Source of the DNA: Macrostomum lignano
Taxonomy: Eukaryota
Assembly (NCBI GenBank): GCA_002269645.1
Contig: NIVC01000753.1
Location: 124,001 to 188,000, forward strand
DNA: 64,000 bases
Direction of reading: 5' to 3'
Translations under genes and position numbers: made by a program
Shown: in pieces, positions 2,777 to 62,511 of the stretch
How positions within the stretch are numbered: position 1 is the stretch's first letter
Layout of the letters: each line of letters starts with the position of its first letter
Notes under the pieces: model-generated
The model's database searches: none
Told to the model about the DNA's origin: nothing
The model's input: only the letters and a program-made list of their open reading frames with translations

Positions 2777-4539
2777 TCAAAGCAGAGCCGAAGCCGACGA
2801 GGCCATGGGACCGCCGGTGGCGACTTGCAGAAGCCGTTGAAAGCGTTCCAGCTGATCCTTGACCGCGGCGGGGTCGGCGGCGGTGGTCAGCTGCTGCTGC
2901 TGCTGCTGCTGTATCTCCAGAATCATGCGCAGCGCGCTCGGCGGCGCGTCGGTGGCTGAGGCAGGCAGGATGGGCCGGAACAGGCCGTCGCTGATGCCGC
3001 CTCCAGGCTGCTGCACTGAATGGTCGGCAGTGAATCCGGGCAGCGGACTGCTGCTCAGGCTGGACGGCGCCAGGGGCCGCGGACGGGCCAGCGGAGCGAC
3101 GGAGTTGGCTCCGCCTGAGGTGGCGCTGGCGGCTGAGCTGGCGGCCGAGCAGAACGGAATCGGAGCGAAGAGCTCGGGAGCGATTGGCTGTCCGGTTGTG
3201 GGTGGTTCGAGTTCGTTGTGTACTTTGCGTAGAGTTTACCCTGTGTCCTATGTACAGTTTATACTGTGTCCTATGTACAGTTTACCCTGTGTCCTATGTA
3301 CAGTTTATACTGTGTCCTATGTACAGTTTACACTGTGTCCTATGTACAGTTTACCCTGTGTCCTATGCACAGTTTATACTGTGTCCTACGTACAGTTTAC
3401 CTTGTGTCCTATGTACAGTTTACACTGTGTCCTATGTACAGTTTATACTGTGTCCTACGTACAGTTTACCCTGTGTCCTATGTACAGTTTACACTGTGTC
3501 CTATGCACTTCCTGTGTTGCACGCATAAGATTGGCACGGTTCCATCTGTCATTCTGGTTCGCAACTCATAGCAACTCACACTGTGGCAGTAGGGCGAACT
3601 TCTCAGCGAGTGCAGAGCCGCCATCGCCAGCTGCTGCAGCGGACCGCCAAAGCCGCCGCCAGAGGAGCCGGCAGCACCTGCGGCGGCTGCGGCCGCGGCG
3701 GCGGCGGCTACGGCTGCGGCAGATGTTGAAGCCGAGTCTTCGCCTGACGACGGCTGCGACAACGGCGAGTGATAGAAGCTGGACGGCTGGGTGATGGCGG
3801 CCACTTCCTCCTCTTCGGCCATGCTTAAACTGTCGCTGTCCGGCTGCGGCGGCGGCGGCGGCTGCTGGACTGTCAGCCAGTTACTGATCGGACGGCTGAT
3901 GGGCTCTGAGGAGAGGAGGTAGAATTGCATGTACAAAGTTCTCAAAAATTTTCTGCCAGAAGGGGGCAGCTGACCTCCTTGACCTCCCCCTGGATGGCTT
4001 CCCCTTAGCAGGTAAACAGTAATCTCAAATGTCAGTGGGGGCAGTTGAGGCCAGACATCCTCACAAAAAAAAGCTTTTACTTTTCTTAGTTGCTACTCAA
4101 CTCAGTAGAGTAGTGCGATTGTCAAATATTTAGAAGATTATTATAAAAACTCACGAAAAGCCGTCAGCCGGGACGGCGGCGCGGCGAAGTCGATGCTGCT
4201 GACTGGCCGGCGCTTCTTGGGCGGCACTCGCAGATCGGCGGCGACAGCAGCTGGAATCGGCGGCGCCGCGACAGTCGCCGCAGTCGAAGTCGATGCGGGT
4301 GGCGCAGGCCGACGCCTGGACGAGGCGGCTGCCGACAAAACGGCGGAGCTCAACGGCGCCTCACCGATCGGAGCGAAGCCGGTGTGGCTCTGCGGCCGGG
4401 ACGGGCAGGCGGCCAGGGGGGCCGGCCGGCTCAGCAGGTCCCGGTAAGCCGACCACAGCTGCGGGTGCCGCGACCGGAGCAGCGCCGCGTCCTCCCCGGA
4501 GACGGGGTAGCGGTCCAGAACTCGGCCCGCGATCGGCAT
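2777..4539 (-). CDS. Orphan low-complexity protein, multi-exon (exons 4539-4155, 3905-~3580, ~3200-2777)
   Basis: ATG in a GCCACCATG context at 4539; phase-1 donor C|GTGAGT at 4155 matches acceptor ctcctctcctcag|AG at 3905; donor GTGAGT after 3580; Ala/Pro/Gln-rich open frame to 2777; the last junction is not resolved. Confidence 0.5.
3233..3505. repeat. 23-bp minisatellite, ~12 copies (probably intronic)
   Basis: gtgtcctatgtacagtttatact units; explains the Cys/Val-rich spurious ORFs. Confidence 0.95.
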
Positions 4540-4550
4540 GGTGGCTGGCG

Positions 4551-5602
4551 GGAGATTGGAGTGGGTGAGATTGGAGTGGGTGAGATTGGAGTGGGTGAGA
4601 TTGGAGTGGGTGAGATTGGAGTGGGTGAGATTGGAGTGGGTGAGATTGGAGTGGGTGAGATTGGAGTGGGTGAGATTGGAGTGGGTGAGATTGGAGTGGG
4701 TGAGATTGGAGTGGGTGAGATTGGAGTGGGTGAGATTGGAGTGGGTGAGATTGGAGTGGGTGAGATTGGAGTGGGTGAGATTGGAGTGGGTGAGATTGGA
4801 GTGGGTGAGATTGGAGTGGGTGAGATTGGAGTGGGTGAGATTGGAGTGGGTGAGATTGGAGTGGGTGAGATTGGAGTGGGTGAGATTGGACTGGGTGAGA
4901 TTGGACTGGATGAGATTGGACTGGGTGAGATTGGACTGGGTGAGATTGGAGTGGAGTGAGATTGGAGTGCAGTGATATTAGACTGAGTGAGATTGGAGTG
5001 GAGTGATATTGGAGTGGAGTGAGATAGGAGTGGAGTGAGATTGGAGTGGAGTGAGATTGGACTGGGTGAGATTGGAGTGGAGTGAGATTGAAGTTATGTC
5101 AGATTGGAGTGAGGTGAAATTGGAGTGGGGTGAAATAGGAGTGGGGTGACATTAGACTGAGTGAGATTAGACTGGTGAGATTAGACTGGGTGAGATTGGA
5201 CTGGGTGAGATTAGACTGGGTGGGATTCGAGTGGGATGAGATTGGACTGGGTAAGTTTGGAGTGGGTGAGATTGGAGTGGGTGAGATTGGACTGGGTGAG
5301 ATTGGACTGGGTGAGATTGGATTGGGTGAGATTGGACTGGGTGAGATTGGAGTGAGTGAGATTGGAGTGGGTAATATTGGACTGGGTGAGATTGGATTGG
5401 GTGAGATTGGACTGGGTGATATTGGACTGGGTGAGATTGGACTGGGTGAGATTGGAGTGAGTGAGATTGGAGTGGGTAATATTGGACTGGGTGAGATTGG
5501 ATTGGGTGAGATTGGACTGGGTGATATTGGACTGGGTGAGATTGGACTGGGTGAGATTGGATTGGGTGAGATTGGACTGGGTGATATTGGACTGGGTGAG
5601 AT
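4551..5602. repeat. 15-bp G-rich minisatellite (gagattggagtgggt)n
   Basis: More than 20 perfect units followed by diverged units; the ORFs over it are repeat artefacts. Confidence 0.97.
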
Positions 5603-6299
5603 CGAACTGGATAAAGGGAGATTGGAGAGAGGAGAAAATGATAAAGCATCCAAGAGCAGTGCGATTTCGTGCATTCTTATATTTTACTTTCTTAATCTTG
5701 CTGCTATGAGTAGTATGCTTCAGAAAAACGCAATAAAAGATTTGGAGCTCCGGATGTCGGGGAATTGGCTTGGGTAATCCAGCATTTCCGAATTGGTCGC
5801 GAAGTGATTCAACAGGCCACAATGCCTCGCTAGGCCATCTTAATGGCTCTTTGTTTTTCTATTCGGCAAATCTAGCGTGGCAACAAAGCACCTGAACTCC
5901 ACAATTAGCAGCAGATCAGATTGTGCTGGCGGGGTGGCGCTGGGAACAAAGCCTGTTTCCCCTGCTAGAAGCGGAAATTTCCTCGGGTCAGACGGTCTGG
6001 CGTCGCGACCCAGCCGGATCAGAGGGAAAGAAAGTGAAGGAAGAATTATTTGGCTCCATTTAGCGTGCCAATGCGGTTTGGAGTTTCTTCATTCTGTGAG
6101 TTTTTCCTGCCCAGAAACCGTTGGGGCGCCAGGCGGATCCGGGTAGAGCTTCTCATGAATTGTCTATCAGTGGCCTGCCGGTCTGCGGCCGCTGTCGCTG
6201 TCTGCGCGGCTCTTTGGTGACACACATCCAGCCTGCCTTGATGGCGGATTAAGTGATTGAGAAAGGCAGAAGGAATGGTGGAGTTCGGAATGGCTCTAT

Positions 6300-7190
6300 T
6301 TGGTGTTTCGGGACTCTGATTGGTGTTTCGGGACTCTGATTGGTGTTTCGGGACTCTGTTTGGTGTTTTGGGACTCTATTCGGTGCTTTGGGACTCTGTT
6401 TGGTGTTTTGGGACTCTGTTTGGTGTTTTGGGACTCTGTTTGGTGTTTCGGGACTCTGATTGGTGTTTTGGGACTCTATTCGGTGTTTCGGGACTCTGTT
6501 TGGTGTTTTGGGACTCTATTCGGTGCTTTGGGACTCTGTTTGGTGTTTTGGGACTCTGATTGGTGTTTTGGGACTCTGTTTGGTGTTTCGGGACTCTGAT
6601 TGGTGTTTTGGGACTCTATTCGGTGTTTCGGGACTCTGTTTGGTGTTTTGGGACTCTATTCGGTGTTTTGGGACTCTGTTTGGTGTTTTGGGACTCTGTT
6701 TGGTGTTTTGGGACTCTGTTTGGTGTTTCGGGACTCTGATTGGTGTTTTGGGACTCTATTCGGTGTTTCGGGACTCTGTTTGGTGTTTTGGGACTCTATT
6801 CGGTGCTTTGGGACTCTGTTTGGTGTTTTGGGACTCTGTTTGGTGTTTTGGGACTCTGTTTGGTGTTTTGGGACTCTATTAGGTGTTTAGGGACACTATT
6901 CGGTGTTTTGGGACTCTATTCGGTGTTTTGGGACTCTATTCGGTGTTTTGAGACTCTATTCGGTGCTTTGGGACTCTGTTTGATGTTTCGGGACTCTGTT
7001 TGGTGTTTTGGGTCTCTGTTTGATGTTTCGGGACTCTGTTTGGTGTTTCGGGACTCTGTTTGGTGTTTTGGGACTCTGTTTGGTGTTTTGGGACTCTATT
7101 CGGTGTTTTGAGACTCTATTCGGTGTTTAATGACTATTCGGTGTTTTCGGACTCTGTTTGGTACTTCGGAACTCTGTTTGGTGTTTTGAA
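6300..7190. repeat. 20-bp minisatellite (tggtgttttgggactctgtt)n, ~44 copies
   Basis: Direct tandem units with recurrent variants. Confidence 0.97.
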
Positions 7191-7454
7191 GCCTTTACGA
7201 GCATCTGGTGTCTTTGGACTTTCTACATGTATTTCAAGTGTTTGTCTTTCTCGCAAGTAGCTGCTAATGCTGAACCTTGAGAAGGAGTCCGGTTTTTTAA
7301 TCCTAAGAGGATTAGCAATCAGCCCCCAGTCCTCTTTGTCTTTTCTCAAGACTTTAACCATATTTACGAGTAATTTAAATATAGCACGGGTTCTGCATTA
7401 CTCAACTGAACCTAAACACGATTAGTTGGGACAGCTTCAGCCTGAGGCCTCTCG

Positions 7455-8438
7455 TCAGTCAGTCAGTCAGTCAGTCAGTCAGTCAGTCAGTCAGTCAGTC
7501 AGTCAGTCAGTCAGTCAGTCAGTCAGTCAGTCAGTCAGTCAGTCAGTCAGTCAGTCAGTCAGTCAGTCAGTCAGTCAGTCAGTCAGTCAGTCAGTCAGTC
7601 AGTCAGTCAGTCAGTCAGTCAGTCAGTCAGTCAGTCAGTCAGTCAGTCAGTCAGTCAGTCAGTCAGTCACCCACTCACTCAAGTCAGTCAGTCAGTCAGT
7701 CAGTCAGTCAGTCAGTCAGTCAGTCAGTCAGTCAGTCAGTCAGTCAGTCAGTCAGTCAGTCAGTCAGTCAGTCAGTCAGTCAGTCAGTCAGTCAGTCAGT
7801 CAGTCAGTCAGTCAGTCAGTCAGTCAGTCAGTCAGTCAGTCAGTCAGTCAGTCAGTCAGTCAGTCAGTCAGTCAGTCAGTCAGTCAGTCAGTCAGTCAGT
7901 CAGTCAGTCAGTCAGTCAGTCAGTCACCCACTCACTCAAGTCAGTCAGTCAGTCAGTCAGTCAGTCAGTCAGTCAGTCAGTCAGTCAGTCAGTCAGTCAG
8001 TCAGTCAGTCAGTCACCCACTCACTCAAGTCAGTCAGTCAGTCAGTCAGTCAGTCAGTCAGTCAGTCAGTCAGTCAGTCAGTCAGTCAGTCAGTCAGTCA
8101 GTCAGTCAGTCAGTCAGTCAGTCACCCACTCACTCAAGTCAGTCAGTCAGTCAGTCAGTCAGTCAGTCAGTCAGTCAGTCAGTCAGTCAGTCAGTCAGTC
8201 AGTCAGTCACCCACTCACTCAAGTCAGTCAGTCAGTCAGTCAGTCAGTCAGTCAGTCAGTCAGTCAGTCAGTCAGTCAGTCAGTCAGTCAGTCAGTCAGT
8301 CAGTCAGTCAGTCACCCACTCACTCAAGTCAGTCAGTCAGTCAGTCAGTCAGTCAGTCAGTCAGTCAGTCAGTCAGTCAGTCAGTCAGTCAGTCAGTCAG
8401 TCAGTCAGTCAGTCAGTCAGTCAGTCAGTCAGTCAGTC

Positions 8439-8470
<32 letters not shown>

Positions 8471-8472
8471 AG
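7455..8472. repeat. (CAGT)n microsatellite with recurrent cacccactcactcaag interruptions
   Basis: Direct reading; the 500-aa SQSV ORF is an artefact. Confidence 0.98.
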
Positions 8473-10062: not shown

Positions 10063-12029
10063 TCAGGCATTGACCAAAACACTGGGCTGCGGGATACCTG
10101 ACACTCGGCGGTAGGGTAAGTTTGCTGCATGAATGAACTCACCGCTCATCTCCTTGCGAATGACGTCGATGGGAAACGGCGAGGCCAGCTGATAGTGCCG
10201 CATCTCCGCCGAAGACTCCGAGCAGTCGTTGAGTCGCAGCATCTCCATGGCAACGGCCATAGTTGCCGGGCTGCACTGGAAGCACAGGTGACCGGGATTC
10301 ACGCACAGGTCCTGTTCGCACCGGTGCACCAACAAACCGGTGTCGGTGCTGTCCATGGGCACGCCGTGGTACAGCATGGCGACCAGGGTGTCCAGCCGCC
10401 ACACTTTGTCGGATCCGCGCAGCCCGTCGATTCGCTTCATCTTGCCCTTGGCGTCCGGCACAGTCAGCACGCAGGAGTCGCCTCCGTCCGCTCCCAGCCA
10501 GGCTCTCGTGAAGGCCTCGCGACCTTCCGCTGGATCGGCGACCTCCTTCAGGATCTTCTTCAGCAGGTTAGCGATCACGTCCGCCAGCTCAGCCTCCGAC
10601 ATGTCCTGAGCGGCAGTATAGAGACCACCGCTAGCTCAGCGTCCCTGATGCACCCTCCCAGTCTCCCGCTACCTCCCCTCAGTGTCCCTAATGCACCCGC
10701 CCAGTCTCCCTCTACCTCCCCTCAGCGTCCCTGATGCACCCACCCAGTCTCCCGCTACCTCCCCTCAGTGTCCCTAATGCACCCGCCCAGTCTCCCTCTA
10801 CCTCCCCTCAGCGTCCCTGATGCACCCGCCCAGTCTCCCGCTACCTCCCCTCAGTGTCCCTGATGCACCCTCCCAGTCTCCCGCTACCTCCCCTCAGCGT
10901 CCCTGATGCACCCACCCAGTCTCCCGCTACCTCCCCTCAGTGTCCCTGATGCACCCTCCCAGTCTCCCGCTACCTCCCCTCAGCGTCCCTAATGCACCCG
11001 CCCAGTCTCCCTCTACCTCCCCTCAGCGTCCCTGATGCACCCACCCAGTCTCCCGCTACCTCCCCTCAGTGTCCCTAATGCACCCGCCCAGTCTCCCGCT
11101 ACCTCCCCTCAGCGTCCCTGATGCACCCGCCCAGTCTCCCGCTACCTCCCCTCAGTGTCCCTGATGCACCCTCCCAGTCTCCCGCTACCTCCCCTCAGCG
11201 TCCCTGATGCACCCACCCAGTCTCCCTCTACCTCCCCTCAGTGTCCCTAATGCACCCGCCCAGTCTCCCTCTACCTCCCCTCAGTGTCCCTAATGCACCC
11301 ACCCAGTCTCCCTCTACCTCCCCTCAGCGTCCCTGATGCACCCGCCCAGTCTCCCGCTACCTCCCCTCAGTGTCCCTGATGCACCCTCCCAGTCTCCCGC
11401 TACCTCCCCTCAGCGTCCCTGATGCACCCACCCAGTCTCCCGCTACCTCCCCTCAGTGTCCCTGATGCACCCTCCCAGTCTCCCGCTACCTCCCCTCAGT
11501 GTCCCTGATGCACCCGCCCAGTCTCCCGCTACCTTTGAAGCCCCTCCTCCGCTCCTTAGACCCCACCCGATCAGATCACAGCCTTGATCCGCCAACCCAA
11601 AGCTCACCAGGGCGGTGCTCCTGGCCTCCCTCAGTCTGGCATAGTCAGCAGGTAGAAGAGTTCGCTTCTTCTCCTTCTTGTTCCGCTTGCCTGTGCGCAG
11701 GTGTGACACAGCCTTGTACCACAGGCCGGACAGTCGCCTGGCCCGGCTCATGCACAGCACGATGGCCGCGCTCTCGCTGAGTCGGCTGTGCTGCTGCTGT
11801 TGCTGCTGCCGCTGCTGCTGCTGCAGATACTGCCGGCAGAAGTCGGACTCCGAGACGGTCCTTGCAGCTCCGACAGGCTCTTCCTGTTTAAACAAAGTCG
11901 GCGGAACTTCCCTCTCCATTCGGCAAGTGTTGCTCGTATTGGGAATGAAAGTTTCTTGGGAATAATTCGCGATGTCTTGAGCTGGCTTTGCTTTCTGCAC
12001 TAGGGAGGACTGGGGAGCAGAGCCTATCT
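10063..12029 (-). CDS. Orphan protein with a His-Cys-box / His-Me-finger (HNH-like) zinc module; exons 12029-11533 and 10605-10063; 5' exons further upstream
   Basis: Acceptor tttatttcatgtcag at 12030; donor AAG|GTAGCG at 11533 and acceptor ctctatactgccgctcag|GAC ATG at 10605 are both phase 0; motif SCVL...LVAMLYHG...VHRCEQDLCVNPGHL; poly-Gln and basic KRNKKEKKR in the upstream exon. Confidence 0.7.
10636..11532. repeat. 43-bp minisatellite, ~21 copies, filling an intron
   Basis: Unit ccctcagcgtccctgatgcacccgcccagtctcccgctacctc; the array starts at the splice donor. Confidence 0.97.
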
Positions 12030-12464
12030 CTGACATGAAATAAATTATATCCAAATCTATTTATGGACTCCGGCGGAGGGGGTTGGGGAAATTGGCGGGC
12101 AAATGGGGAGGTGGGGTGAGGTTCAGCGCTGCCAGTTTGTCAGTATCAAGGGGGGACTCCACTCAGCACAGTAAGCACAGTCATGCCTTAGCTTTTGCTG
12201 CGCCAAGGATCCTTGGGGCTAGAATTTGGAGTGCAGTTAGTATTGTCTAACTACATACATTGAATATTAGTGATACAGATGTGTGTTTTCATTCCTAACT
12301 TTGAAAGATTTAAATTTTTTCTTCGGTGTCACACTCACTCAACAGACCAGCTTTAAAATGGCATCAATCAAACAGTGATTTTGATACGTAGTTTAATGAT
12401 GAAATGAAAATAAATGCTTGCGAGAGATCTGAGGCGTCATCGTGACCACAACCAGCTCTGATTC

Positions 12465-12620: not shown

Positions 12621-13424
12621 GTCTGTTTGGATTGGAAATCCAAATCCAGATTGCAGCTCTATGAGTGTGCGCTGCGCTGCCACGCTGCTATGACGCACCC
12701 AGCGTCGCCAGCGAATCGCGTCGCTTCCTGAACCCTGTCCCGCATGACGGCAGGGGTCTTTATTCCTGTATTTTTTGAGAGGCCGTTCAAAATATGCGCC
12801 TCTCTTCCCATGTGTCTGCATCCCGCATCTGCTGCCCTCATATTCACTTACACTTCTCTTTCAACTGCAGCCATCCCCATCGATGCTTTCTCTCCGGTTT
12901 CTGGGGGAACTGACTCACTTCAACAGTCGCACCGACTCACCTAGAGTTATCCCCCATCCATCCTTTTCCCTACACAGTAAAAACACTGCCGCGATTCTGC
13001 AGATGACGGCTGGGGGATTTGAGACTGGTTTGAGGCTGTTGGTTAGGGGGAGGGGATTGTTGGTGAGTCAAAGTCGGCGGACAAAGACCACCAGCCGATC
13101 TGTAGCTGCTGTTCTAAGAAAACCGCTAACCTAGAAAGTGTGTCAAGTGCAACCTGCTTCTGGTTCAGATATACAATTCTGCGCCCCATCATCTGACCCC
13201 ATTGAGTAATTACCGGTGCAGATCACACACATGGCATGGAGCAACTGTTCAAGTGGCTCTGCAAGGCCTACCTTGAGTGTTTCTTTTGAGAAATATCACA
13301 TCCATCCAGCCACTTGAACACTGAGCCGAGGTAATTGACAGGGGAAGCACCCGGCCACTTCGATAATCCACTTTTTACAGGTCAGAGAATATTGTAATAA
13401 CGGTGACATTCACACCAATTTCAG

Positions 13425-14008
13425 TGCCCTTTCACCCAACTGCAATGCCCTCTCACCCAACTGCAGTGCCCTCTCACCCAACTCCAGTACCCTCTCACCC
13501 AATTCCAGTGTCCTCTCACCCAACTGCAGTGCCCCCTCACCCAATTCCAGTGCCCTCTCACCCAACTCCAGTGCCCTCTCACCCAACTGCAGTGCCTTTT
13601 CACCCAACTCCAGTGCCCTCTCACCCAACTCCAGTGCCCTCTCACCCAACTGCAGTGCCCTCTCACCCAACTGCAGTGCCCTCTCACCCAACTCCAGTGC
13701 CCTCTCACCCAACTGCAGTGCCCTCTCACCCAACTCCAGTGCCCTCTCACCCAATTCCAGTGTCCTCTCACCCAACTCCAGTACCCTCTCACCCAATTCC
13801 AGTGTCCTCTCACCCAACTGCAGTGCCCCCTCACCCAATTCCAGTGCCCTCTCACCCAACTCCAGTGCCCTCTCACCCAACTGCAGTGCCCCCTCACCCA
13901 ATTCCAGTGCCCTCTCACCCAACTGCAGTGCCCCCTCACCCAATTCCAGTGCCCTCTCACCCAACTCCAGTGCCCTCTCACCCAACTGCAGTGCCTTTTC
14001 ACCCAACT
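13425..14008. repeat. 21-bp minisatellite (cagtgccctctcacccaactg/c)n, ~28 copies
   Basis: Direct tandem units; begins right after a minus-strand GTGAGT donor near 14012. Confidence 0.97.
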
Positions 14009-14012
14009 CACA

Positions 14013-14512: not shown

Positions 14513-15794
<1,282 letters not shown>

Positions 15795-15947
15795 TGAGTT
15801 GATTCAAAATCAGCTGTCTATGGTAGAACTTTTTTATTTTTAGCAGACGCGCATCTTTCACGCAACCCAAGTCCGTGAGATCCCAGCAGCACCACGCCAG
15901 TAAGCAGCCACTCAATTCGATCGGAAGGATTTGAACCAGCCAGCAAG

Positions 15948-19364: not shown

Positions 19365-19545
19365 TATATTGAATCTAAAAAGTGCTCACTTACTCTGAGT
19401 AATTGCGTATTGGAATGTTTATAAACAGTTTATAGACAGACAGACAGAGACAGCTCAGATTTAGATATATAGATTTTGCCAAAGCGCATTCGATCTCAAT
19501 AGACAAGCTGCGGTCACCGGCTGAGCTCAGTCATCAGTCAGCCAG

Positions 19546-21054
19546 TCAGGATGGATCGTCGGCGATGCTGCTGAACTGCGAATGCGTCGGCGACGGCACT
19601 GGATTGTTGAGCATGGCGGTGAACTCGGCGTAGTCAACCTGGCCGTCCCGTTGACGTCGACCTCCTTGAGCATCTCTTCAACGTCGTTGTCGTCGCACTC
19701 GTGCCCGAGTCCCATGAGCACGTGCTTGAGCTCGGAAGCCGATATGAAACCGTTCTTGTCCTTGTCGAATACCCGAAACGTGGCCATCAGTTCGTCCTCC
19801 TCGCCGACGTTGTCGGACTCGTCGGTTGGCGAGTCGGCGGCCAGCCGCTTCTCGGACTTCATCAGCTCGATGAACTCCTCCAGCTCGATGGTGCCGTTGC
19901 CGTCTTTGTCGATGCGGTGCAGCATCTCCTTTTTGTTGGGGGTTCAGGATTAATTGACGAAATTTTTTTTCAATGCTCAAATTCCTGTTGTCGCGCCACT
20001 TTCATGAGGGCCAACCCACAAGGCACAGAGGGTGTACATGCCTTACGATTAGACAGACTTGAATGTGCTCAGGAGTCAGCCGAATGGGCAGAATTGCCTC
20101 AGTGCTGGCTGTGGGACGATGTCGCTCGTTGAAGGCGTTGCTCTAGGATGCCCAAAGCCCTCTCATGCGAATATGATCATTATCATTGCATCTGATGCTA
20201 TTCTGCATTTGTTCTACAGTTGTCTTAAGTCGTCCTTGATTGGAACGTAGATCTTAGCAGCTATACTCTACGAGACAGATAAGCCACTGTTACAGCAATC
20301 GGCTGAATTTAAACGTTGAATTTTAGAGCAACTGCAACTTTACGCACTGATTCTACATGCATGGTCGCTCATCTAGAGAATAAAGAATCTGCTGATTTGG
20401 AAGTTTCAGCCAATCAGGGACTAGCTGGTGTTGGTGTGAGGTGGGGCACGGTGAGATAGATATAGCAGCCAATCAGCGACTGACACTGGGAGTGAGGGGG
20501 TGTGATCAATAATCCGCTATGGAGTGATGGGGTGGCAAGGATGAACCGAGAAAGCCATAGTTCCCTGATTGGATTTTTAATGATGTACGATCGTATCGAA
20601 GTGGCGGATGCTCTCACCTTCAACTGGCCTGCACTAGGCGATTGTCCGATGCAACGCAGCACGATGCCCAGCTCCTCTGTTGTGATGCAGCCATCGCCTA
20701 AGATCAGTGAGAAGATCACAAAGTTTAGATTGGTACTCCATCATGGATAAATAAATTAGAATATGCAAAATGCATTAGCAGGAAGTTTCCAGTTTTGTAG
20801 CACTAAAATGGCAACGTCTCAACTTCTGAACTTTGCATTGCTAATGAAGCAAGTATGCGTTCTGTTCGAGGTTGGGGCTCGCTAGTGCAGTTCCATTCTC
20901 AAGTCAACCAAACCTACTATGGCTCGTATGTGTACTCACCGTCCTTATCAAACAGTTGGAACGTCTCGTGCAGCATCTGCAGTTCGGACGCGGACACCAG
21001 GGTGTTGTCATCGCCGACTTCCGCGTCGGAATCGCCAGTTGACGAGGTTGCCAT
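19546..21054 (-). CDS. Calmodulin-like four-EF-hand protein; exons 21054-20940, 20697-20618, 19928-19546; 1-bp frameshift in EF-hand 4
   Basis: EF loops DKDGDGCITTEE, DKDGNGTIELEE, DKDKNGFISASE and DVNG/DGQVDYAE; GT-AG junctions are phase-consistent (1, 0). Confidence 0.9.
19990..20171 (+). mobile_element. SINE fragment in intron 2 of the calmodulin-like gene
   Basis: gagggccaacccacaaggcacagagggtgtacatgcc...gctcaggagtcagccgaatgggcagaattgcc matches the other copies. Confidence 0.75.
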
Positions 21055-25736: not shown

Positions 25737-28700
25737 TCAGCTGGCTCCGCCAGTATCCGTTCCCGTAGCGACTCTGTCGTAGAAGAAATCGTCACTTGAG
25801 TAAAGAGTCTTTGATCGCGTGATCGACAGCAGCCCAGGCTCCAGACTCTGCTGTTGCGGCTGCTGCCGCTGATGTTTCAGCTCCACCTGCTGCTGCTGCG
25901 GCTGCTGTCGTTTAGGTCGACGGCTCGGGCATCGGTAGGAGAAATCCGGCTGGCCGGCGCTTCTGGGTCTCCAGCGCGACGTTCGTCCATTCTGATGCAC
26001 CTTCATCGGCGCCGCCGTCGCCGAATCTTCGTTCTGCTGCCACCAGCGCGGCGGACAGCAGGACACCGTGGCAGTCTTGCCTAACAGGACCAGGACTGCT
26101 AGAAATTCGCACAGTCCAATCACGGAGACTCCCAGGTACAGTCCCATCAGGCCACCGATGTCGGAGAGCAGCTGGGAGGCTGGGAATTCGGGCTCCTCAA
26201 CAATCATGTCGCCTTTGTCCTTGGCGGCCACCAGGATGAGGTTACTGATCTCTAGGCGGACTTGGCGCAGCACGCTGGCCATGCTCATGTTCTCGCTGCT
26301 TTTGGTGGGGCTGTCCGATGAGAGAGTGGCATGCGGGTGAATATATGCGATGGCGCAATTGTAAATTGGCGCAGACTGAACCCTTTTAATGGTGAAATAG
26401 CGGCCCCTAATAAAATCTAAGGAGTTTGACTGCTTGCATGTAAATTCCTATTGCCCAAAAATAAACAAAATCGCCGCAAAGTTTCTGATGAAGATTTCAA
26501 ATTTCCTGTGTTGAGGAATCAGTGTTCTGGTTAAGTAACTCTTTTAAAGAACCGCCAATTAAAAGGTTCTTAATCATGTTTGTGAAAAAAAAGCAAAAAT
26601 ATGTGTTGGTCTGGAGGTTAAGCATGCTTTTATTTCTCAAATAAAGATAGTACATTGTATTTTTAATTATTTTAAACGCATCCAAAAATTAAGTGAATAA
26701 GCAACACCTTTTACAAAACAAGGGATTAGCAGTGAGTGTATCAGGACGCTACACAGATTCGCAGAAAAAATTTGAAGGCCGATTTTCAGATATTGGTTCT
26801 GACTCTTCAGAAGTATGTATAGAGATAATCTTTGTCCAATAGGTGTGTCATAATGAGTAAAATACTTCAGGAGACTTTTATTTTGTGTGGGTCATTCTCG
26901 TCGCCCTACTACGAATGATTCCTGTAGTTGTACAGCAGCTATACTTTTACAGTAGCGTAGTTTAAGTATACTTTTGCACACTGCTGACTCATTTAGAATC
27001 AATGATAATCCTCTTGCAGCCTTGGAAAGACCAGTTGAGAATTAAGAAAAAATATTCCAGGACAACAAATAAATAGGTGGAATTCGATAGACGGATCAAT
27101 GCACAAGACTTTAAGTAACTTGGTTTAGTGCTTCTCCGTTGCAATTGGAAAATTGTAATTAGCCTCAAAAGAGTTAAAGGTCGAAAACACTCTTATAATG
27201 CATCACTCGTCTCGTCCTGTACGAACATCGATATGAAGAAATCGGCCTTCAAAATTTTTTTTCACGAATCACGAATGTAGCGTCCTGATGTACTGCTAGT
27301 GATCCTAAATATAATACCAATAATTACTTCATTCTATGATTCTATGATGCTTAAAACGAGCTTTAACTTAAAAAGTAAAAACCACATGATCTAAAATTTC
27401 ATTTGCAAGTACCGGAGACTTATCAAAAAGTAACTTCCGTTTCCCAAGTCCGGCATTCTAAAAAAAGAACCGAAAAAACGTGCCGCTTTAACAAAAGTAA
27501 CTTCCGGTACTAAATGTGCCGGAAGCGCCGGAACTTTGCCCAACACTGCAAATTTCAGATTTCTAGTCTCTTCTTCTGAACTTCAGGGTTGCAAATAAAG
27601 TCTCGATGTCCGTAGCAGTTAAGGAATTTTTAACTAGAGGTTACTGGGGATAGTTTTTATATTTTTTGTAGCCTACAAGTAGCAAGCATAAATTCGGGTT
27701 GTTACTTTTTTCGAACTTCAACGCTAAGCTATGGCGCTTTTTATATTCGTTTGTCTGTGCTGGCTGCCTGCCCTTCTATTACATGTATATGTTTTATTAG
27801 ATGAAGATATAACTTTTACAGGGCTAAATAAGAGTAAGAGTATTAGTAAGATACTCTTACTCTTATTACTCTTAAGAGTAAGAGTAAGAGTAAGAGAGAT
27901 TAAGAGTAAATTGTCCAACAAACATGCAAGTGTCTACATACAAATGCGCTAATGCCAAATTTTGTCTATGGACTCGCATGCACTCAGGCTGCTTGTTCAG
28001 CTGATCCAGTCCAGTTCACATTCAATCCATATCGCAAGTATAGAGTTGCCGATGCAGATGCCACACTCGCCCATTTGCCTGATTGAGGGCTTAATCAAAT
28101 CAGAATAACAACAAGTCCGACTAAAACCGGGAAAGGGACTAAATACGGCGAAGAATTCAAGTATATGCCGGGCTCTCTGTGCTAACACTCAGTTCTTTCT
28201 CTGTGTTTTTTCCGCTTGACTGACACCTCGGCGAACTGCTTGCTTTGACAAGGCCTTAACACCCGCCACTTACTTCGCATAAGGAATTTTTGCTTCAACC
28301 CCCGCCCTCACCCGCTCTATCGGGAGTGAGGGGAGGATTATCCTCACTCTAGGGATGCCTGGAAATGGGATAACGTTGCGAAAATTTCTACGAGGCTTCG
28401 GCGCTGAGGCCGGCGTTTCTAGGAAATGCAGTTAATAAATTCGAAGTGCCAGGGAATACCATATAGTGTCCGCGTCTGTCAACTTGGGGCTTCTGCAACC
28501 ACTAGGATTCCATATTAGTTACTATTAAAGCACTGATTCTCCCTCCAATCAATTAACTCCGTCTCATTGCATCCCTATCCTAATCCTCGACGTAATACTC
28601 ACTCTCTTTCCCATCCTCAGCCTCATCCTCGTCCCCATTCTCATTCTGATTCTCATTCTGATTCTCATCCCCATCCTCATCCCCATCCTCATCCCCATCC

Positions 28701-32400: not shown

Positions 32401-35271
32401 ATATAATGCCCTCACAAAAGACAGTTATTAGTGCAATGTGTTTTTCCATGTTTAACTCAGTGGAGGGGGCCACTTTCCTATCACTAAGACACTAGGGCAC
32501 TAGGGCACTAGGACACTAAGACATCTGGACACTAGGACACTAAGACACTAAGACACTAGGGCACTAAGACACTAGGGCACCAAGACACTAAGACACTAAG
32601 ATACTAAGGCAGACCACATGAAAAAAACCACATGTATTACTTTAACCAACGCATCACAATTTCATTATATCCAAATCAAGTGCTTCACGCTCGCATGTCA
32701 CTAAATTTGCATCAACAGATTATCCCGTCATTTCATCCGACTAATTCGATCGCGACAATCCAACGCAGTCCAAAGGCCTACTAGCATTATTGGACATTGA
32801 ATTGGACGAGTTAGATCTGAGCTCTGATGCTCAAAACTGTTCATTTTCTCTGATCCAGGCGGCTCCTCCCCGCTAATGCTCTTCCACTCTGCTCTTCGCC
32901 TTGTTCGCCCCTGATCCCAGCATATCAAAGTGTCACCCTGTCCTAGTGGAGGCGTGTCCTAGCATAGCCGCCTGTCACTCAAAACCCGCAGCGAGGGCAC
33001 TATACTACTCGCCCGAGGGTGAGGGGCTAAGGATCCCGGCTCTCTCCTTCTCTTCCTCCAGTCCCAGTAGCCTTCTAAATTATCCTCGGAATACTTTCCG
33101 AGGCCGGGTCCTGTCAAAGATAATTGCGCTCGGGCATATCGAGTTGCCTTGGAAGCCAAACTGGACGGGAGAGGGGGAAATGTTTGCTCGGATGTGCGGT
33201 GCCATTTCTGCATGATTAGGATTTTGATCGGAAGGAGTGTTCTTCTCTTTCTCAGCAGAGCAGCGGCTCACGCAATGCCCGCCCATATTCGATTAAAAAT
33301 CGCAGTTTGCTCATGCGCAAAACGTAATGCTGGGGTCCTTGAGGCCTGCGTGCTCAACTTTTATTTTCAAAGAGAGAAAAAAGCAGAACTCCCAAGTAAA
33401 TATTCAGTCTGCAACTCCGGCAGTGAATAGTCAATCCAGGTCGACTGTGCAGTGGTTGAGTATTGAGAACACGCCTCTGAGCGAGTCCTGTCTATTCCGC
33501 GGCGCATTCCAGCTTGTTTCACTGCTGTTTGGCATAATTATAATTCTTCCTCTGCCGTTAGAGAGGGGCATTCGGAGCAGACAGAGTTGACTCTGGCCCC
33601 AGTCCTTGTCCTGATTATCGTCCTCCAGAACTTTCTGTTCCCTCTCTTTATTGTTAGTGTCGCCAAAATCTGTGGGGTTACTGGGCTGACTAGGGCTTCG
33701 ATTCTAATCTAGATTTTGTCCAACACTCATTAAGGCGGATACCTCTTCAGAACTTGGTCATTGCATTGTATACCATAAGTCTACTACTTGTCGTTCGTTG
33801 CTCAATAAGCAAAGCTCTGCACTCTGCACTCTCTATGCAAGTAGCTTTGGATGCAGTTGGATTTTCCTGTCATTCAACTTCATCAATCTAAACGTTTGCC
33901 GACTCGAAACTTCACCAAATCGAAACTTTACCAACCCGAAACCACACCTCACTCATATCACCAACCCGAAACTTTACCAACTGAAATTTTCATCAACCCA
34001 AAAAATCTTACTCGATGAAAAAAAAATTATTATAATTCAGAAACCATTCAGTTGTTAAGCTTGTTGAAAACTCAAAAAACCAGAGCTCACTCGTCTCTAT
34101 AGCGCACCGCAGTCTTGTCCAAGCATTCCAAGTTTTCCGCCAACTGCTCGAGTCCGTAGACGCTCAGGTTGAAGCAGAGCACAGGCGGCCTGTCGTCCAA
34201 CTTAGGCACAATCAGGTGCGGATTAAAGCAGCGGCAATTCTCGTAGAATAACCGCTGCGACAGCAGCTGATGGCAGTGAAAGTAGCTGAGGTTGTACGGC
34301 CTGGCGAGGCGCAAGTCGTAGTCGTATATATAAGCCGTTTTCTCTGTCTCTCGGCAGTCGCTCTTCTGCGGTATGAGCCGGCGTCTCTTCTGGTCGAGCA
34401 GGATTGTGGTTGTCACTCCGGGCGGCGTTTCAATCATTTCACCTTCCTCTGGCAGAGTATTTGGCAGGTGAATGTAAACCCGGCCGCCGAATTGATAATT
34501 GGAAGAGTTAAAGCGCACGTAGGTTAAATGGTTGCCCCTGAGGAAGAACTGAAGCGACTCAATGGCGTTGACATTCTTCTTGAAGATGAAGTCGTTCAGC
34601 TTGAGAGTGTAACAGGCGCAACGGTAACGCAGCGAGATGCTGTTGCTGTGAAAGTACGGAGCATAGTCCTCAAATATTTCGCACATGGAGTCCATGTTTA
34701 TCTCAGTCTGAATCAATTCTTTCTGTTGGCAGAACGCCAAGTTGGAGATTACTCTCCGCACCTCATCGGCCTGGAAAACGTGACTGTCGATGGTAGACAG
34801 GGTGATGGACCGCACCAGGACGTTAAGGGCTTCATTTAAAAGCGAATTGTTGTGAAATTTGTCCATCAGGCTGCTCAGATTTTGCACTCGAGTATCAGAG
34901 CTCAACCAGTTGGTGAAGTTGCGGAACTGCTCAAACGCGGTATCATTATCTAGCGAGATTGGCGAGTTATCGCAGAACGTGATGTCTGGCCAAGTGAAGT
35001 TTTCCTCATTTGAGTAGTAGGCTGTGAGCACAGGGAACTGGTTGTAGCGCTGCACAACGGAGATCAGATTGCCGACAAAGGAAGTGACTCCGAGCACTAC
35101 CAGGATCAGCCAGAAAAGCTGCTCGTAGCGGTTGGACGAGCTGGCTGAATGCGATATGCCGTGCACTGTAGAGCGGGACAACAGAGCCACCAACTGGGAG
35201 CGAAGTGCGATGCGTCGCCGCAAAGTCGGGCTCTGCTGACTGGAGGAGTTCGGCACTGCATCTGTGTCCAT
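25737..35271 (-). CDS. DEG/ENaC (amiloride-sensitive channel) family subunit; exons 35271-34091, 30174-30004, unresolved exon(s), 26375-25737
   Basis: N-terminal STVHG (HG motif), TM1 FWLILVVLGV, WPDITFC, Cys-rich domain, TM2 LLSDIGGLMGLYLGVSV with GxS filter; exon 1 donor GA|GTGAGC and exon 2 acceptor ttcag|G are both phase 2. Confidence 0.85.
27420..27550. mobile_element. End fragment of a hAT-type element related to 42433-43273
   Basis: Ends in ...gcccaacactg with subterminal aaaagtaacttcc motifs; partner end not found. Confidence 0.5.
27820..27906. repeat. (TAAGAG)n / (CTCTTA)n microsatellite in inverted arrangement
   Basis: aagagtaagagt...actcttactctt...aagagtaagagt. Confidence 0.8.
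28565..28752. repeat. Hexamer microsatellite (catcct/catccc/cattct)
   Basis: Direct reading; the HP/MR/DE ORFs are artefacts. Confidence 0.9.
29369..29427. repeat. (GTT)n microsatellite
   Basis: Direct reading. Confidence 0.95.
30360..30670. repeat. ~69-70-bp C-rich tandem repeat inside the mini-Maverick left end
   Basis: caaagacgcccacc... units at 30466, 30535 and 30605. Confidence 0.9.
31150..31559 (-). pseudogene. Polinton-associated DEDD-exonuclease-like protein, deleted and frameshifted
   Basis: FVIKVFAW...HYYCYRPPHSF...CYWLTNKRHGLDWD, then in another frame VFSKGDVKCQFLSRLL..VYDL...CALAKVALYADW; resembles from memory a conserved Polinton accessory ORF. Confidence 0.55.
31556..32094 (-). 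pseudogene. Conserved Polinton hypothetical protein, 5' frameshift likely
   Basis: EVSVNGKPLYNSKIVDLLHF...PPNGINEFVTCLQENHVP matches the recalled Polinton pattern G.I..S.IVDLL...P.G..EF...L....VP; the nearest ATG (32094) is out of frame. Confidence 0.65.
32117..32449 (-). CDS. Polinton small basic (putative virion core-like) protein, ~110 aa
   Basis: RRCILTYANKSTICFLVECIINLLAGKV...KRRLRRYRNNLRLVA resembles the conserved Polinton ORF (ECxxNxLxGxV...KxxLRxYxxxLR). Confidence 0.7.
   Translation of the reverse strand: MEKHIALITVFCEGIISLRRCILTYANKSTICFLVECIINLLAGKVCCEDSLKRRLRRYRNNLRLVAQSKSAKEARRNLSHPHILRCLPLILTCIKRHLQGNNTGAPVAV
32486..32612. repeat. 9-bp minisatellite (gacactaag/gggcactag), split by the mini-Maverick (left remnant 30245-30278)
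   Basis: The same units lie on both sides of the element. Confidence 0.85.
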
Positions 35272-38458: not shown

Positions 38459-38828
38459 TATGTCGAACCTATGCAATACAACCATGAATTGCTTGTCCGC
38501 CATGAATTTAGGGGGCAAAAACGCAAAAATTCACCTTCGCGAGACTTTGTTCCCTTTAATTTGCCGCGGTTATGATCAGCTAGTTTTTAATGTATTGTTT
38601 TCTTTTATTCGTTTATGATTATGGGCACTTTCAAACTAAAAATAGAAACATAAATTGTTTTGATTTCTATGGCAGCAAAGGCCTAGTGAGATAGACGAGG
38701 CGTACAGCCTATGCGGAATGCATTTAAGGACGCTCAGGCTAAAAGTAAAAACTGGCTGTGTATGGCATCCAAACAGAAGCATTAACGTCGGACCGCGCAT
38801 TAATTTTACAGGCCTGTTCTGTTTATCC

Positions 38829-60822: not shown

Positions 60823-61390
<568 letters not shown>

Positions 61391-61889
61391 TGTCCACCGA
61401 CAACCGATATTTCTATATTTATACATTCCAACAGCCTAAACCCACTCAACTGCAAATTGCAGACCTGGTTAAACTCAGATTTGCAGGCTAAAAAAGCAGG
61501 GCTGATTAGGATAGGAAACACGATAGCCGGGCCTCAAGCTTGAATTTGCACTGCTTAGCAAGTCACGCTAAACACACGAACTGCGTTACCAAAGGACTAA
61601 AAATCCGGCTTCCTTCATCAAAAGCAACAATCAGCATTTCAGATATGCGAATAAAACTGTTAGATGAAGTAAAATCAATTAATTCAATCCATCAAGCAAA
61701 TTATAAATATAATCAATACATCTATTAACAGTTATAACAAGTGAAACTGCTATGTACAGCTTTAGTTAATAATCAGACAGGTAAATGGCTATTATTAACA
61801 GGAAAGATATTTATTGTTCAGAGTAAAAATCAATTAAAAGTGTCGGTCAACTCTGAGCACAGATATATTATAAAGTAGATGGGTTACTC

Positions 61890-62425: not shown

Positions 62426-62511
62426 TCAATGATGAGCGACAGGCTTCATCAGAATCTGAGGCACATGCTGAGGCTGCTGGTGCTGAGGCTGCTGCATCTG
62501 CTGCTGATGGA

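Follow-up and report, generated by a model that had tools for sequence, protein, structure and literature searches.

A probable flatworm Nuclear Factor I gene in Macrostomum lignano with a zinc loop spaced as in I-PpoI

The locus described here is very probably a multi-exon gene for a transcription factor of the flatworm NFI/CTF family, lying on the minus strand from ~12036 to ~2777 of the window (the whole 64-kb stretch of Macrostomum lignano DNA that was analysed) and encoding a protein of ~672 aa. Exon 2 and the 3' end of exon 1 together encode the Nuclear Factor I (NFI) DNA-binding domain (DBD). The outcome is one of annotation, in that a gene resembling a novel, dead nuclease is read as that of a flatworm NFI transcription factor; since the gene belongs to the NFI family, the "undescribed system" flag attached to it in a first-pass annotation can be lifted. 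The coordinates of the gene model and of the residues discussed below are collected in Table 1.

Table 1. Features of the M. lignano NFI locus in window coordinates (residues in ORF numbering).
Feature	Position	Strand	Equivalence or basis
Coding exon 1	11608..12036	-	ORF/translation; tblastn of M. lignano P0001/P0002; NFI antenna alignment; donor context
Intron 1	10606..11607	-	1002 nt, GT..AG; TRF, sequence, intron ends
Coding exon 2 (the flagged exon)	10143..10605	-	phmmer against PDB NFI, E 1e-17; AF2 and Foldseek; homolog P0003; S. mansoni intron
Zinc-ligand codons	10288..10473	-	Codon coordinates; HMMER alignment to NFI chains; invariant columns; ligand identities from PMC12630593
Cys44 codon	10473-10471	-	NFI-X Cys103
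Cys95 codon	10320-10318	-	NFI-X Cys156
Cys100 codon	10305-10303	-	NFI-X Cys162
His105 codon	10290-10288	-	NFI-X His167
DNA-reading beta-hairpin	10405..10434	-	Alignment with NFI; residue roles from PMC12630593
Arg57 codon	10434-10432	-	NFI-X Arg116
Lys66 codon	10407-10405	-	NFI-X Lys125
Stretch with I-PpoI-like spacing	10261..10326	-	Alignments; local Foldseek match to 1a74_A
His93 codon	10326-10324	-	General-base position; invariant in the flatworm clade
Thr114 codon	10263-10261	-	Site of the metal-binding Asn (Asn119) in I-PpoI
Coding exon 3	4155..4544	-	tblastn of P0003; in-frame join; splice contexts
Coding exon 4	3580..3905	-	Sequence alone, without homolog support
Coding exon 5 (tentative last)	2777..3187	-	Open in-phase frame; weak acceptor; without homolog support

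Sequence and fold matches to Nuclear Factor I

The ORF listing and translation of the window gave a minus-strand ORF of 179 aa (10063-10602) in which the three motifs flagged at 10063-10605 were all present, namely SCVL at aa 43-46, WRLDTLVAMLYHG at aa 68-80 and VHRCEQDLCVNPGHLCFQCSPAT at aa 92-114 (window 10329-10261). Their spaced order was as first described, with true spacers of 21 and 11 residues instead of the ~25 and ~10 given. In exact look-ups, neither this ORF nor two neighbouring ORFs of the window had an identical catalogued protein. Searched with phmmer against all PDB sequences, the ORF matched only the DBDs of NFIA/B/C/X, with E-values of 1e-17 to 3.5e-16. A profile made from seven flatworm homologs matched NFI chains in the PDB at E 3e-31 to 2e-27, with profile positions 5-199 aligned to chain positions 7-193, and Smad and I-PpoI were absent from this search at E<=10. 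Weak PDB matches of the profile to an ABC transporter substrate-binding protein, lethal factor, pyocin S5 and phospholipase A2, with E-values of 0.4-2.9, were dismissed as chance. An exhaustive HMMER search recovered 338 relatives, the named ones including an M. lignano "CTF/NF-I domain-containing protein", a trematode "nuclear factor 1 A-type" and C. briggsae NFI-1, and a profile search reached 1651 NFI proteins; M. lignano proteins were matched at E = 4e-83.

The AF2 model of the domain (pLDDT 76, pTM 0.75) gave the same assignment in Foldseek, where NFI structures took each of the top 20 places, with E-values of 1e-10 to 7e-8. In this predicted model the NFI matches extended over 166-181 columns, including the N-terminal helices, with target-normalised TM values of 0.77-0.87. 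The AlphaFold-based comparison proposed in the first-pass annotation bore out its suggestion of a Smad MH1 relationship in the form of a weak match (Foldseek E 0.016, TM 0.60), and gave no significant match to I-PpoI. The MH1 link was a correct lead; the NFI DBD adopts an MH1-type fold in the NFI-X structure (PMC12630593). Smad MH1 (6TBZ, 5MEY) resembles the present domain in its MH1-type core, CCCH zinc site, CVNPxH motif and a beta-hairpin that reads DNA and has this Arg and Lys conserved as well; it differs in that sequence similarity was undetected, Smad lacks the antenna, the protein described here lacks MH2 and the DNA-binding geometry is different (PMC12630593).

In Pfam searches, the ORF scored 14.5 bits against MH1 (PF03165; cutoff 25), and NfI_DNAbd_pre-N (PF10524) was matched by neither the ORF nor the full model. 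The other flatworm homologs were likewise below the MH1 and pre-N thresholds, both of which nematode NFI proteins pass. The zf-His_Me_endon family (PF05551), proposed at first as the domain's home, gave 13.7 bits (cutoff 27) over 17 residues only. The MH1 match (E 0.041) and the zf-His_Me_endon match (E 0.074) both fall below their cutoffs. CTF_NFI (PF00859) was not detected in the 672-aa model, nor was MH2 or any other domain. PF00859 is also unlisted for the non-vertebrate NFI matches, which are database proteins of unverified completeness, suggesting that the CTF_NFI region is not universal in NFI.

The assignment was further borne out at the level of individual residues. The four putative Zn ligands recognized at first, Cys44, Cys95, Cys100 and His105, align with the CCCH zinc ligands of NFI-X (Cys103, Cys156, Cys162 and His167; PMC12630593, from which the hairpin and backbone contact roles are also taken) and do not vary in any of the homologs aligned. 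Equivalents of NFI-X Arg116/Lys125, Lys113, Arg128, Asp124 and Thr145 and of the antenna residue Arg38 are conserved, and the antenna alignment showed those of R38 and K42 to be kept. Specifically, relative to the contact set of NFI-X (base-reading Arg116 and Lys125; backbone Lys113, Arg115, Arg121 and Arg128), the stretch KGKMKRIDGLRGSDKVWRLD retains Arg57, Lys66, Lys54, Lys56 (Arg replaced by Lys), Arg62 and Arg69. The sequence KRNKKEKKR, initially described as "NLS-like", corresponds in the alignment to the basic segment of the antenna in the NFI DBD. A helix is predicted at model residues 170-182, where NFI-X has helix alpha5. The domain is alike to those of NFI/CTF proteins (human NFIA, NFIB, NFIC and NFIX; C. 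elegans NFI-1; 7QQD, 9QKY, 9JH2, 9XVD) in homology over the whole DBD, predicted fold, CCCH ligands, base-reading hairpin Arg/Lys, basic antenna segment and a helix after the zinc site in the position of the NFI-X dimerisation helix.

From these features we infer a fold made up of an MH1-like helical core and the NFI-specific antenna, in which Cys44, Cys95, Cys100 and His105 would hold a single structural Zn2+ that places the beta-hairpin in the DNA major groove. Arg57 and Lys66 would recognise the GG in a half-site of the TTGGC type, and the helix after the zinc site probably serves dimerisation on palindromic sites; the conserved contact residues and the predicted helix suggest binding of TTGGC(N5)GCCAA as a dimer. 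Transcriptional activity would be expected of such a protein, with the Pro/Ser/Ala/Gln-rich C-terminal exons forming a putative disordered regulatory region.

Exon structure and splicing

The description of the locus as an intron-containing animal gene held up, with a multi-exon model and homolog-supported junctions. The predicted upstream exon with poly-Gln and KRNKKEKKR was found as exon 1, which has its start codon at 12036, with a second candidate ATG at 11919, and encodes a Gln-rich N-terminus followed by the first third of the NFI DBD, i.e. helix alpha1 and the basic "antenna" segment WYKAVSHLRTGKRNKKEKKR. The donor that closes this exon, CTG|GTGAGC, is in phase 0, and the tblastn alignments of the M. 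lignano homologs P0001 and P0002 stop at 11608/11605. The junction originally given, 11533/10605, keeps the frame; its donor, AAAG|GTAGCG, however, belongs to the opening unit of a minisatellite with a 43-bp period (20.9 copies by TRF) that occupies 900 nt of intron 1 (10635-11534) and carries a donor-like GGTAG(C/A)G string in every unit. The donor at 11533 was rejected in favour of that at 11608, the homologs reading ..AAM|DM.. with no extra 25 residues. The preference for 11608 follows from the M. lignano homologs skipping these 25 residues, from an S. mansoni intron at the same codon and from the other donors of the gene all being GTGAG. The predicted splice junction is thus 11608/10605 with its GTGAGC donor, as supported by the homologs, and the position and phase of intron 1 are matched in S. 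mansoni Smp_152430 (G210|E211).

Exon 2 supplies the DBD with its MH1-like core: the beta-hairpin that reads DNA, the CCCH zinc site and a helix with a putative role in dimerisation. Its 3' end is in phase 1 at the donor AGCG|GTGAGT, through which the 179-aa ORF reads into the intron. This donor is the splice point of homolog P0003, and the S. mansoni gene is interrupted at the matching place too (..YRS|EN), giving two intron positions in common with Smp_152430. The flagged exon had been taken as the last one; the ORF, however, passes the GTGAGT donor after 10143 and P0003 goes on into exon 4544-4155, with at least three further exons downstream of exon 2 carrying the gene to ~2777. The DBD is thus split by an intron here, whereas that of vertebrate NFI is a single exon.

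Exon 3, with an alternative donor at 4365, is Pro/Ala/Ser-rich and contains VLDRYPVSGEDAALL, in common with P0003, and a basic PPKKRRP motif. Another exon 3 motif, PPKKRRPVSSID, loosely recalls the KR(P/H)KS motif that follows the NFI domain, a likeness too weak to serve as evidence. The predicted exon 4 encodes a low-complexity Pro/Ala/Ser/acidic sequence in a frame open from exon 3 and ends at the donor CAGT|GTGAGT. The tentative exon 5 has a weak phase-0 acceptor (..GGACAG|CCA) and encodes a Gln/Ala/Pro-rich tail ending at a TGA stop (2779-2777). In the predicted gene model none of the five exons has its frame interrupted, and the donors are all GTGAG; the low-complexity, Pro/Ser-rich C-terminal half is a further likeness to NFI/CTF proteins.

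Some features of the locus would fit a decaying pseudogene or a copy carried on a repetitive or transposable element: the introns are dense with minisatellites, M. lignano has several paralogous copies and one cestode relative is called "Retrotransposon protein" in UniRef. Such an origin is nevertheless very improbable, given the unbroken frames of the five exons with canonical GTGAG..AG sites, the retention of all functionally critical residues, the intron positions in common with Schistosoma and the single copy within the 64-kb window. Around the gene, transposase/RT ORFs and terminal repeats were looked for and none was present.

Resemblance of the zinc loop to I-PpoI

The H-x-C-x4-C-x-N-P-x-H-L-C spacing of the flagged stretch is that of the I-PpoI string quoted in the first-pass annotation, with 8 of the 23 residues identical in a gap-free alignment. 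The positions singled out there were recovered: His93 matches the His98 general base by sequence position, the I-PpoI spacing being kept, and Thr114 aligns without gaps at the Asn119 position, which is occupied by Ala in the trematode, cestode and monogenean homologs. Motif and ligand alignment also agreed with a zinc-binding CCCH loop of the kind common to I-PpoI, Smad MH1 and NFI. In structural comparisons, the full model did not retrieve I-PpoI, and the core model matched 1a74_A locally, over 19 columns (rmsd 1.0 A, 42% identity) at E 1.8.

These likenesses, along with the marginal zf-His_Me_endon match (also seen in a monogenean homolog at E 0.037), are what would speak for a newly domesticated His-Cys-box homing endonuclease module of I-PpoI type in an undescribed class of nuclear DNA-binding protein. 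They are all sub-threshold and confined to ~19 residues, whereas the whole 190-residue domain matches NFI (E 1e-17 to 3e-31, TM ~0.85) and the homologs carry CTF/NF-I labels in UniProt. The CVNPxH motif is present too in canonical nematode and insect NFI and in Smad, and MH1, the fold shared by NFI, has already been placed in the inactive group of His-Me finger domains (PMC5714182); the relation of the MH1-type fold to His-Me finger nucleases had itself been published (Grishin 2001, as cited in PMC5714182). The His-Cys-box reading is therefore largely refuted and a new domestication is extremely unlikely, as the phmmer, profile and Foldseek matches assign the domain to the NFI family. I-PpoI (PF05551; 1A73/1A74) belongs with it to the same His-Me finger superfamily in published classifications and resembles it in the spacing of the zinc loop and the local structural match. 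It differs in the lack of a significant match at the domain level, in having the metal-binding Asn where Thr stands here and in being an intron-encoded mobile ORF. The domain described here is instead encoded by parts of two exons in a cellular gene that has five, and is not a free-standing ORF in a mobile (group I) intron.

That the domain might be an active His-Me finger nuclease, with catalysis kept or regained, is suggested by His93, which occupies the site of the general base and does not vary among the flatworm homologs examined. I-PpoI catalysis, however, depends on a conserved Asn together with the His (PMC11325842), and the Asn position, which holds Thr here, holds Ala in the trematode, cestode and monogenean homologs, leaving no conserved metal ligand. 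The overall fold also matches NFI and not nucleases, and MH1 domains are classed as inactive (PMC5714182), leaving an active enzyme with hardly any probability. As the first-pass annotation proposed, the module most likely serves a nuclear protein in DNA binding and is dead as a nuclease. It would not be expected to cut DNA or to function as a nuclease, and its likeness to I-PpoI is very probably a relic common to all MH1/NFI domains.

Divergence of the flatworm NFI clade

The search for orthologs and paralogs proposed at the outset recovered homologs from M. lignano, trematodes, cestodes and monogeneans. The closest were M. lignano "CTF/NF-I domain-containing" proteins, with 59-66% identity in BLASTP and 70% over the aligned DBD, followed by the trematode, cestode and monogenean homologs; DBD identity to cestode and trematode-like members was 43-46%. 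The M. lignano proteins A0A1I8H4G3, A0A1I8IAJ1 and A0A1I8FBQ4 belong to the same clade and show the same substitutions. S. mansoni Smp_152430, which shares two intron positions, and Clonorchis sinensis "nuclear factor 1 A-type" (GAA52456) also fall in it. The neodermatan members are much longer (1100-1500 aa) than the ~672 aa of the present protein. All flatworm matches for which the taxon was looked up were in this divergent clade. Literature searches for flatworm, planarian and Schistosoma NFI and for Smp_152430 returned nothing relevant, the matches being NFIL3 or NF-Y, and found no experimental study of flatworm CTF/NF-I proteins.

NFI DBDs are among the most conserved transcription-factor domains of animals, yet the flatworm clade stands at ~30% identity. 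Canonical NFI DBDs share 72-96% identity with one another across bilaterians, including annelid, bryozoan and mammal, as against 28-35% between the flatworm clade and the NFI of other animals and 31-35% between the present domain and canonical NFI. Besides this low identity, the sub-threshold Pfam MH1 and pre-N scores and the undetected CTF_NFI, the domain differs from canonical NFI at defined positions. Within the beta-hairpin, the redox-sensitive Cys-3 (NFI-X Cys119) is replaced by Gly60, with Gly in nearly all flatworm homologs and Cys in one monogenean. Also in the hairpin, Ala123 is replaced by Ser64, within a clade-wide change of Gln122-Ala123 to Gly-Ser. The zinc loop is shorter by three residues, and a His located two residues before the second zinc Cys is invariant in the clade. 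The loss of Cys-3, the Ala123 to Ser change and the shorter loop mean that DNA specificity or regulation could differ.

The low identity, these clade-wide changes and the placement in the clade of every flatworm match whose taxon was looked up would be consistent with an NFI lineage that has shifted in function, whether as an old paralog or as an ortholog evolving very fast, and in which DNA specificity and/or regulation is altered. Examples of such shifts would be that Cys-3 no longer provides redox control and that the zinc loop, with its conserved extra His, has been remodelled. On the other hand, the base-reading Arg/Lys and most backbone contacts are kept, so that core TTGGC recognition may be unchanged, and C. 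elegans NFI-1, though divergent, binds the mammalian consensus (PMC13637464). On balance a shifted lineage is possible but unlikely. A broader proposal is that the clade is functionally distinct, the I-PpoI-spaced zinc loop, the invariant His and the missing Cys-3 reflecting either a retained ancestral His-Me-finger character (an intermediate between nuclease and NFI/MH1) or changed DNA recognition or regulation; this is doubtful, and clearly less probable.

The position of the flatworm clade below the Pfam thresholds means that its members are easily missed or mislabelled in flatworm genomes, those of parasites included. The clade combines retained DNA-reading residues with three changes, in that the redox Cys is lost, the zinc loop is remodelled and one more His is invariant; together with the NFI structures of 2025, this mix of kept and changed residues provides a natural test of what in the NFI domain is indispensable. 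The Schistosoma homolog is annotated as "hypothetical protein". In the window, the neighbours of the M. lignano gene are ordinary animal genes, one of them including an M13 peptidase exon whose matches, at ~60% only, were to metagenomic proteins.

Assignment of the exon to the NFI family

An ORF scan gave a 179-aa ORF on the minus strand (window 10063–10602) with SCVL at residues 43–46, WRLDTLVAMLYHG at residues 68–80 and VHRCEQDLCVNPGHLCFQCSPAT at residues 92–114, separated by a 43-bp minisatellite of 20.9 copies from an upstream open frame (to 12054) that holds the poly-Gln run and KRNKKEKKR. The strings quoted in the first-pass annotation were all located and its description was therefore accurate at sequence level, apart from two spacers given as ~25 and ~10 residues that measure 21 and 11.

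Pfam by itself would not have settled the family of this ORF, with zf-His_Me_endon (PF05551), proposed earlier as a check, reaching 13.7 bits against a cutoff of 27 and MH1 14.5 bits against a cutoff of 25. A phmmer search against every PDB sequence returned nine distinct sequences, all DNA-binding domains of Nuclear Factor 1 (NFI) A/B/C/X (E 1e-17 to 3.5e-16), in alignments that begin at the LLxKLxK helix, take in KGKMxRID..DKVWRLD and STD, and reach the CVxPxH motif. The nearest database proteins were three Macrostomum lignano entries named “CTF/NF-I domain-containing protein” in UniProt (59–66% BLASTP identity, E down to 4e-83). Among the 338 relatives from an exhaustive HMMER search, these were followed by a trematode, monogenean and cestode group (E 1e-35 to 1e-22) including Schistosoma mansoni Smp_152430 (“hypothetical protein”) and a Clonorchis “nuclear factor 1 A-type”, and after that by C. 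briggsae NFI-1 and the main body of animal NFI proteins. The domain profile matched 1651 proteins, essentially all annotated as NFI with a Pfam MH1 + NfI_DNAbd_pre-N architecture, and a flatworm-only profile matched NFI structures over nearly the whole domain (E 3e-31 to 2e-27), with Smad and I-PpoI absent from its PDB matches even at E≤10. The locus, earlier put forward as the best candidate for an undescribed system, is a member of the well-known NFI transcription-factor family, homologs of which already carry the CTF/NF-I label.

Structure comparison, which had been suggested against I-PpoI and MH1, also pointed to NFI. The joined domain was modelled with AlphaFold2 (211 aa, 30-sequence alignment, mean pLDDT 76, pTM 0.75), and the model gave 49 Foldseek matches in the PDB, the best 20 of which were all NFI DNA-binding domains (including 9XVD, 9JH2, 9LC2, 9W7S, 7QQD and 9QKY; E 1e-10 to 7e-8, target-normalised TM 0.77–0.87). 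The Smad MH1 domain 6TBZ came next, as a weak match (E 0.016, TM 0.60), and none of the 49 was I-PpoI or an HNH protein. With a core-only model of the part encoded by the flagged exon (pLDDT 66), E values were 1e-6 to 7e-5 for NFI, 0.3–0.7 for Smad4 MH1 and 1.8 for I-PpoI 1A74, the last over 19 aligned columns (rmsd 1.0 Å, 42% identity). In these predicted models the I-PpoI/His-Cys-box resemblance noted earlier is thus a real but local feature at the bottom of a hierarchy NFI >> MH1 > I-PpoI; the earlier structural reading lay on the correct branch, with NFI far ahead as the identity of the module.

Gene model and splice sites

The flagged exon encodes only the C-terminal two-thirds of the NFI domain, the remainder being encoded by the upstream exon. 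The homolog-supported join runs in phase 0 from 11608 (CTG^GTGAGC, ^ marking the splice site) to 10605 (..CTCAG^GAC), in agreement with the M. lignano homologs P0001/P0002 across the junction, ..DYARL(N/R)EASDAAM^(D/V)M(T/S)DTELADIV.., and with Smp_152430, whose intron at G210^E211 matches it exactly in codon and phase. The donor at 11533 (AAAG^GTAGCG) chosen in the first-pass annotation is in phase, yet adds 25 residues found in no homolog; it lies in the first unit of the 43-bp minisatellite, and the GGTAG(C/A)G donor-like string in each unit accounts for this unsupported junction. Nor is the flagged exon the last one, as had been stated: the ORF passes through an AGCG^GTGAGT donor after 10143, and P0003, a third M. 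lignano homolog, continues beyond ..REMS with ..VLDRYQLSTDDAAYV.., matching VLDRYPVSGEDAALL in a window exon at 4544–4155. A Schistosoma intron is also found at the exon-2 end position (..YRS^EN..). Every chosen donor is GTGAG. With two further in-frame exons, the second of them tentative (see table), the model yields a 672-aa product whose C-terminal half is Pro/Ser/Ala/Gln-rich and had no match in a Pfam scan.

That the locus is a pseudogene or a copy borne by a transposon is unlikely, as the 64-kb window contains one copy only, reading frames and splice sites are intact, critical residues are kept and there are intron positions in common with Schistosoma.

Long, clean tandem arrays make up most of the introns of the gene (see table). 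Smp_152430 extends over 42 kb (NW_017386031.1, L002, locus 3001–45580) and is annotated only as “hypothetical protein”; two of the three introns in its NFI-type domain fall at window-gene positions, and the third, after GSDK, has no counterpart there.

DNA-binding residues and relation to nucleases

NFI-X combines an MH1-like core with an NFI-specific antenna; its structural Zn2+ is held by Cys103, Cys156, Cys162 and His167, and only Arg116 and Lys125 make sequence-specific contacts.PMC12630593 The four zinc ligands correspond to ORF Cys44, Cys95, Cys100 and His105, invariant in all aligned homologs, and the base-reading pair to the conserved Arg57 and Lys66. Backbone contacts in NFI-X involve Arg38, Lys42, Lys78, Gln110, Lys113, Arg115, Arg121 and Thr145.PMC12630593 Residues contacting or close to the backbone are conserved as Lys54, Lys56, Arg62 and Arg69 (NFI-X Lys113, Arg115, Arg121 and Arg128, with Arg115 replaced by Lys) and as Thr86 (Thr145), and Asp65 matches Asp124, which forms a salt bridge to Arg38. 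Two positions have changed: the redox-sensitive Cys-3 (Cys119) is Gly60, and Ala123, which faces the TT methyl groups,PMC12630593 is Ser64. In the upstream exon WYKAVSHLRTGKRNKKEKKR aligns with NFI WFNLQA(A/R)KRKYFKKHEKR, and the basic run KRNKKEKKR, previously described as NLS-like, is therefore the antenna segment, which contains the counterparts of Arg38 and Lys42.

Homology, predicted fold and residue conservation link the protein to NFI in sequence and model, and by analogy with the NFI literaturePMC12630593,PMC13637464 its zinc binding, DNA motif, dimerisation and transcriptional activity would be those of an NFI-type sequence-specific transcription factor. The zinc ion would steady the MH1-like core and place the beta-hairpin in the major groove, where Arg57 and Lys66 would recognise GG in a TTGGC-like half-site while basic residues of the antenna and hairpin would grip the DNA backbone. 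Beyond the zinc site, the helix at model residues 170–182 probably swaps to give a dimer on palindromic sites, and the disordered C-terminal half would recruit co-regulators. C. elegans NFI-1 binds the mammalian consensus.PMC13637464

The zinc ligands, the His at the I-PpoI His98 position and the Thr at the Asn119 position listed earlier were all seen in the ORF alignment. The His lies two residues ahead of the second zinc Cys and occurs in every flatworm homolog examined (VHRC, VHTC, IHTC or IHSC) with the same spacing as I-PpoI His98; in canonical NFI proteins other residues occupy this position and the loop is longer. The domain could be read as an active nuclease, but catalysis by I-PpoI requires the His together with a metal bound by a conserved Asn,PMC11325842 and the metal-ligand position is Thr in the window protein and Ala in neodermatans, so nuclease activity is unlikely. 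In the His-Me finger classification Smad MH1 (PF03165, the Pfam family to which the NFI domain is also assigned) forms group 16, which lacks the catalytic HisPMC5714182 and is viewed as a homing endonuclease that degenerated and was taken over for DNA binding (Grishin 2001, as cited in PMC5714182). Domestication of an inactive endonuclease, as first suggested, therefore holds as the accepted deep history of the fold and not as a new event at this locus.

Divergence of the flatworm clade and other features of the window

Over the domain, canonical NFI proteins of bat, insect, crustacean, horseshoe crab, nematode, annelid and bryozoan shared 72–96% identity among themselves; for the window protein and the related flatworm sequences, identity to any of them was only 28–35%. 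The window protein shared 70% identity with M. lignano and 43–46% with cestode and trematode-like members. All flatworm matches with a looked-up taxon fell in this divergent clade, and NFI of the cnidarian jellyfish Rhopilema esculentum scored among the canonical group. Clade-specific changes (alignments A3 and A4) comprise Gly in place of Cys-3, Ser in place of Ala123, shortening of the zinc loop by three residues, and the invariant His. The clade may represent a fast-evolving ortholog or an old paralog, and these sequence changes make a functionally shifted NFI lineage plausible. The modest interest of the locus comes from this extreme divergence and the I-PpoI-like zinc loop. A literature search found no flatworm NFI papers, and a 2025 NFI review mentions C. 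elegans and Drosophila as the only invertebrates.

Some relatives carry misleading database names, probably from chimeric gene models or propagated mis-annotation: the cestode NFI-like fragment P0011 (Hymenolepis diminuta) is named “Retrotransposon protein”, and P0395/P0397/P0398 (Strongyloides), in the nematode NFI cluster, “INO80 complex subunit E”.

Features of the window in addition to the NFI domain exons
Feature	Position	Strand	Remarks
NFI gene, further in-frame exon	3905-3580	minus	
NFI gene, further in-frame exon	3187-2777	minus	tentative
NFI-gene intron array	3229-3505		23 bp x12
NFI-gene intron array	4552-5602		15 bp x69
NFI-gene intron array	6294-7188		20 bp x45
NFI-gene intron array	7454-8472		(GTCA) x253
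NFI-gene intron array	10635-11534		43 bp x21
Satellite outside NFI gene	13410-14009		21 bp x28
Satellite outside NFI gene	14514-15795		(TATC) x322
Satellite outside NFI gene	53709-54545		28 bp x30
Satellite outside NFI gene	60823-61391		(CTAT) x145
EF-hand (calmodulin-like) coding exon	19527-19925	minus	two clear EF-hand motifs
DEG/ENaC (amiloride-sensitive sodium channel) exons	34087-35271, 25737-26288	minus	Pfam ASC
Ser/Gln-rich ORFs	38718-40115, 40438-40875	plus	465 aa + 145 aa
M13 (neprilysin-like) zinc metallopeptidase, three exons	52664-56257	plus	HEITH motif; Peptidase_M13_N + Peptidase_M13
C2H2 zinc-finger protein ORF	62426-63112	minus	five fingers; long poly-Gln runs on flanks
His/Ala/Pro-rich ORF	63459-63977	minus	adjoins C2H2 zinc-finger ORF

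The 394-aa DEG/ENaC ORF covers ASC profile positions 2–324 and a second, ~8 kb further on the minus strand (lower coordinates), the last 50. The M13 catalytic exon had best database matches only ~60% identical and unnamed. The His/Ala/Pro-rich ORF may belong to the C2H2 zinc-finger gene as an upstream exon, and the two Ser/Gln-rich ORFs, the longer giving no match in a Pfam scan, may encode a lineage-specific low-complexity protein. The mini- and microsatellites outside the NFI gene produce long spurious ORFs on several strands, for example with LSIY and HPTPVPS repeats.
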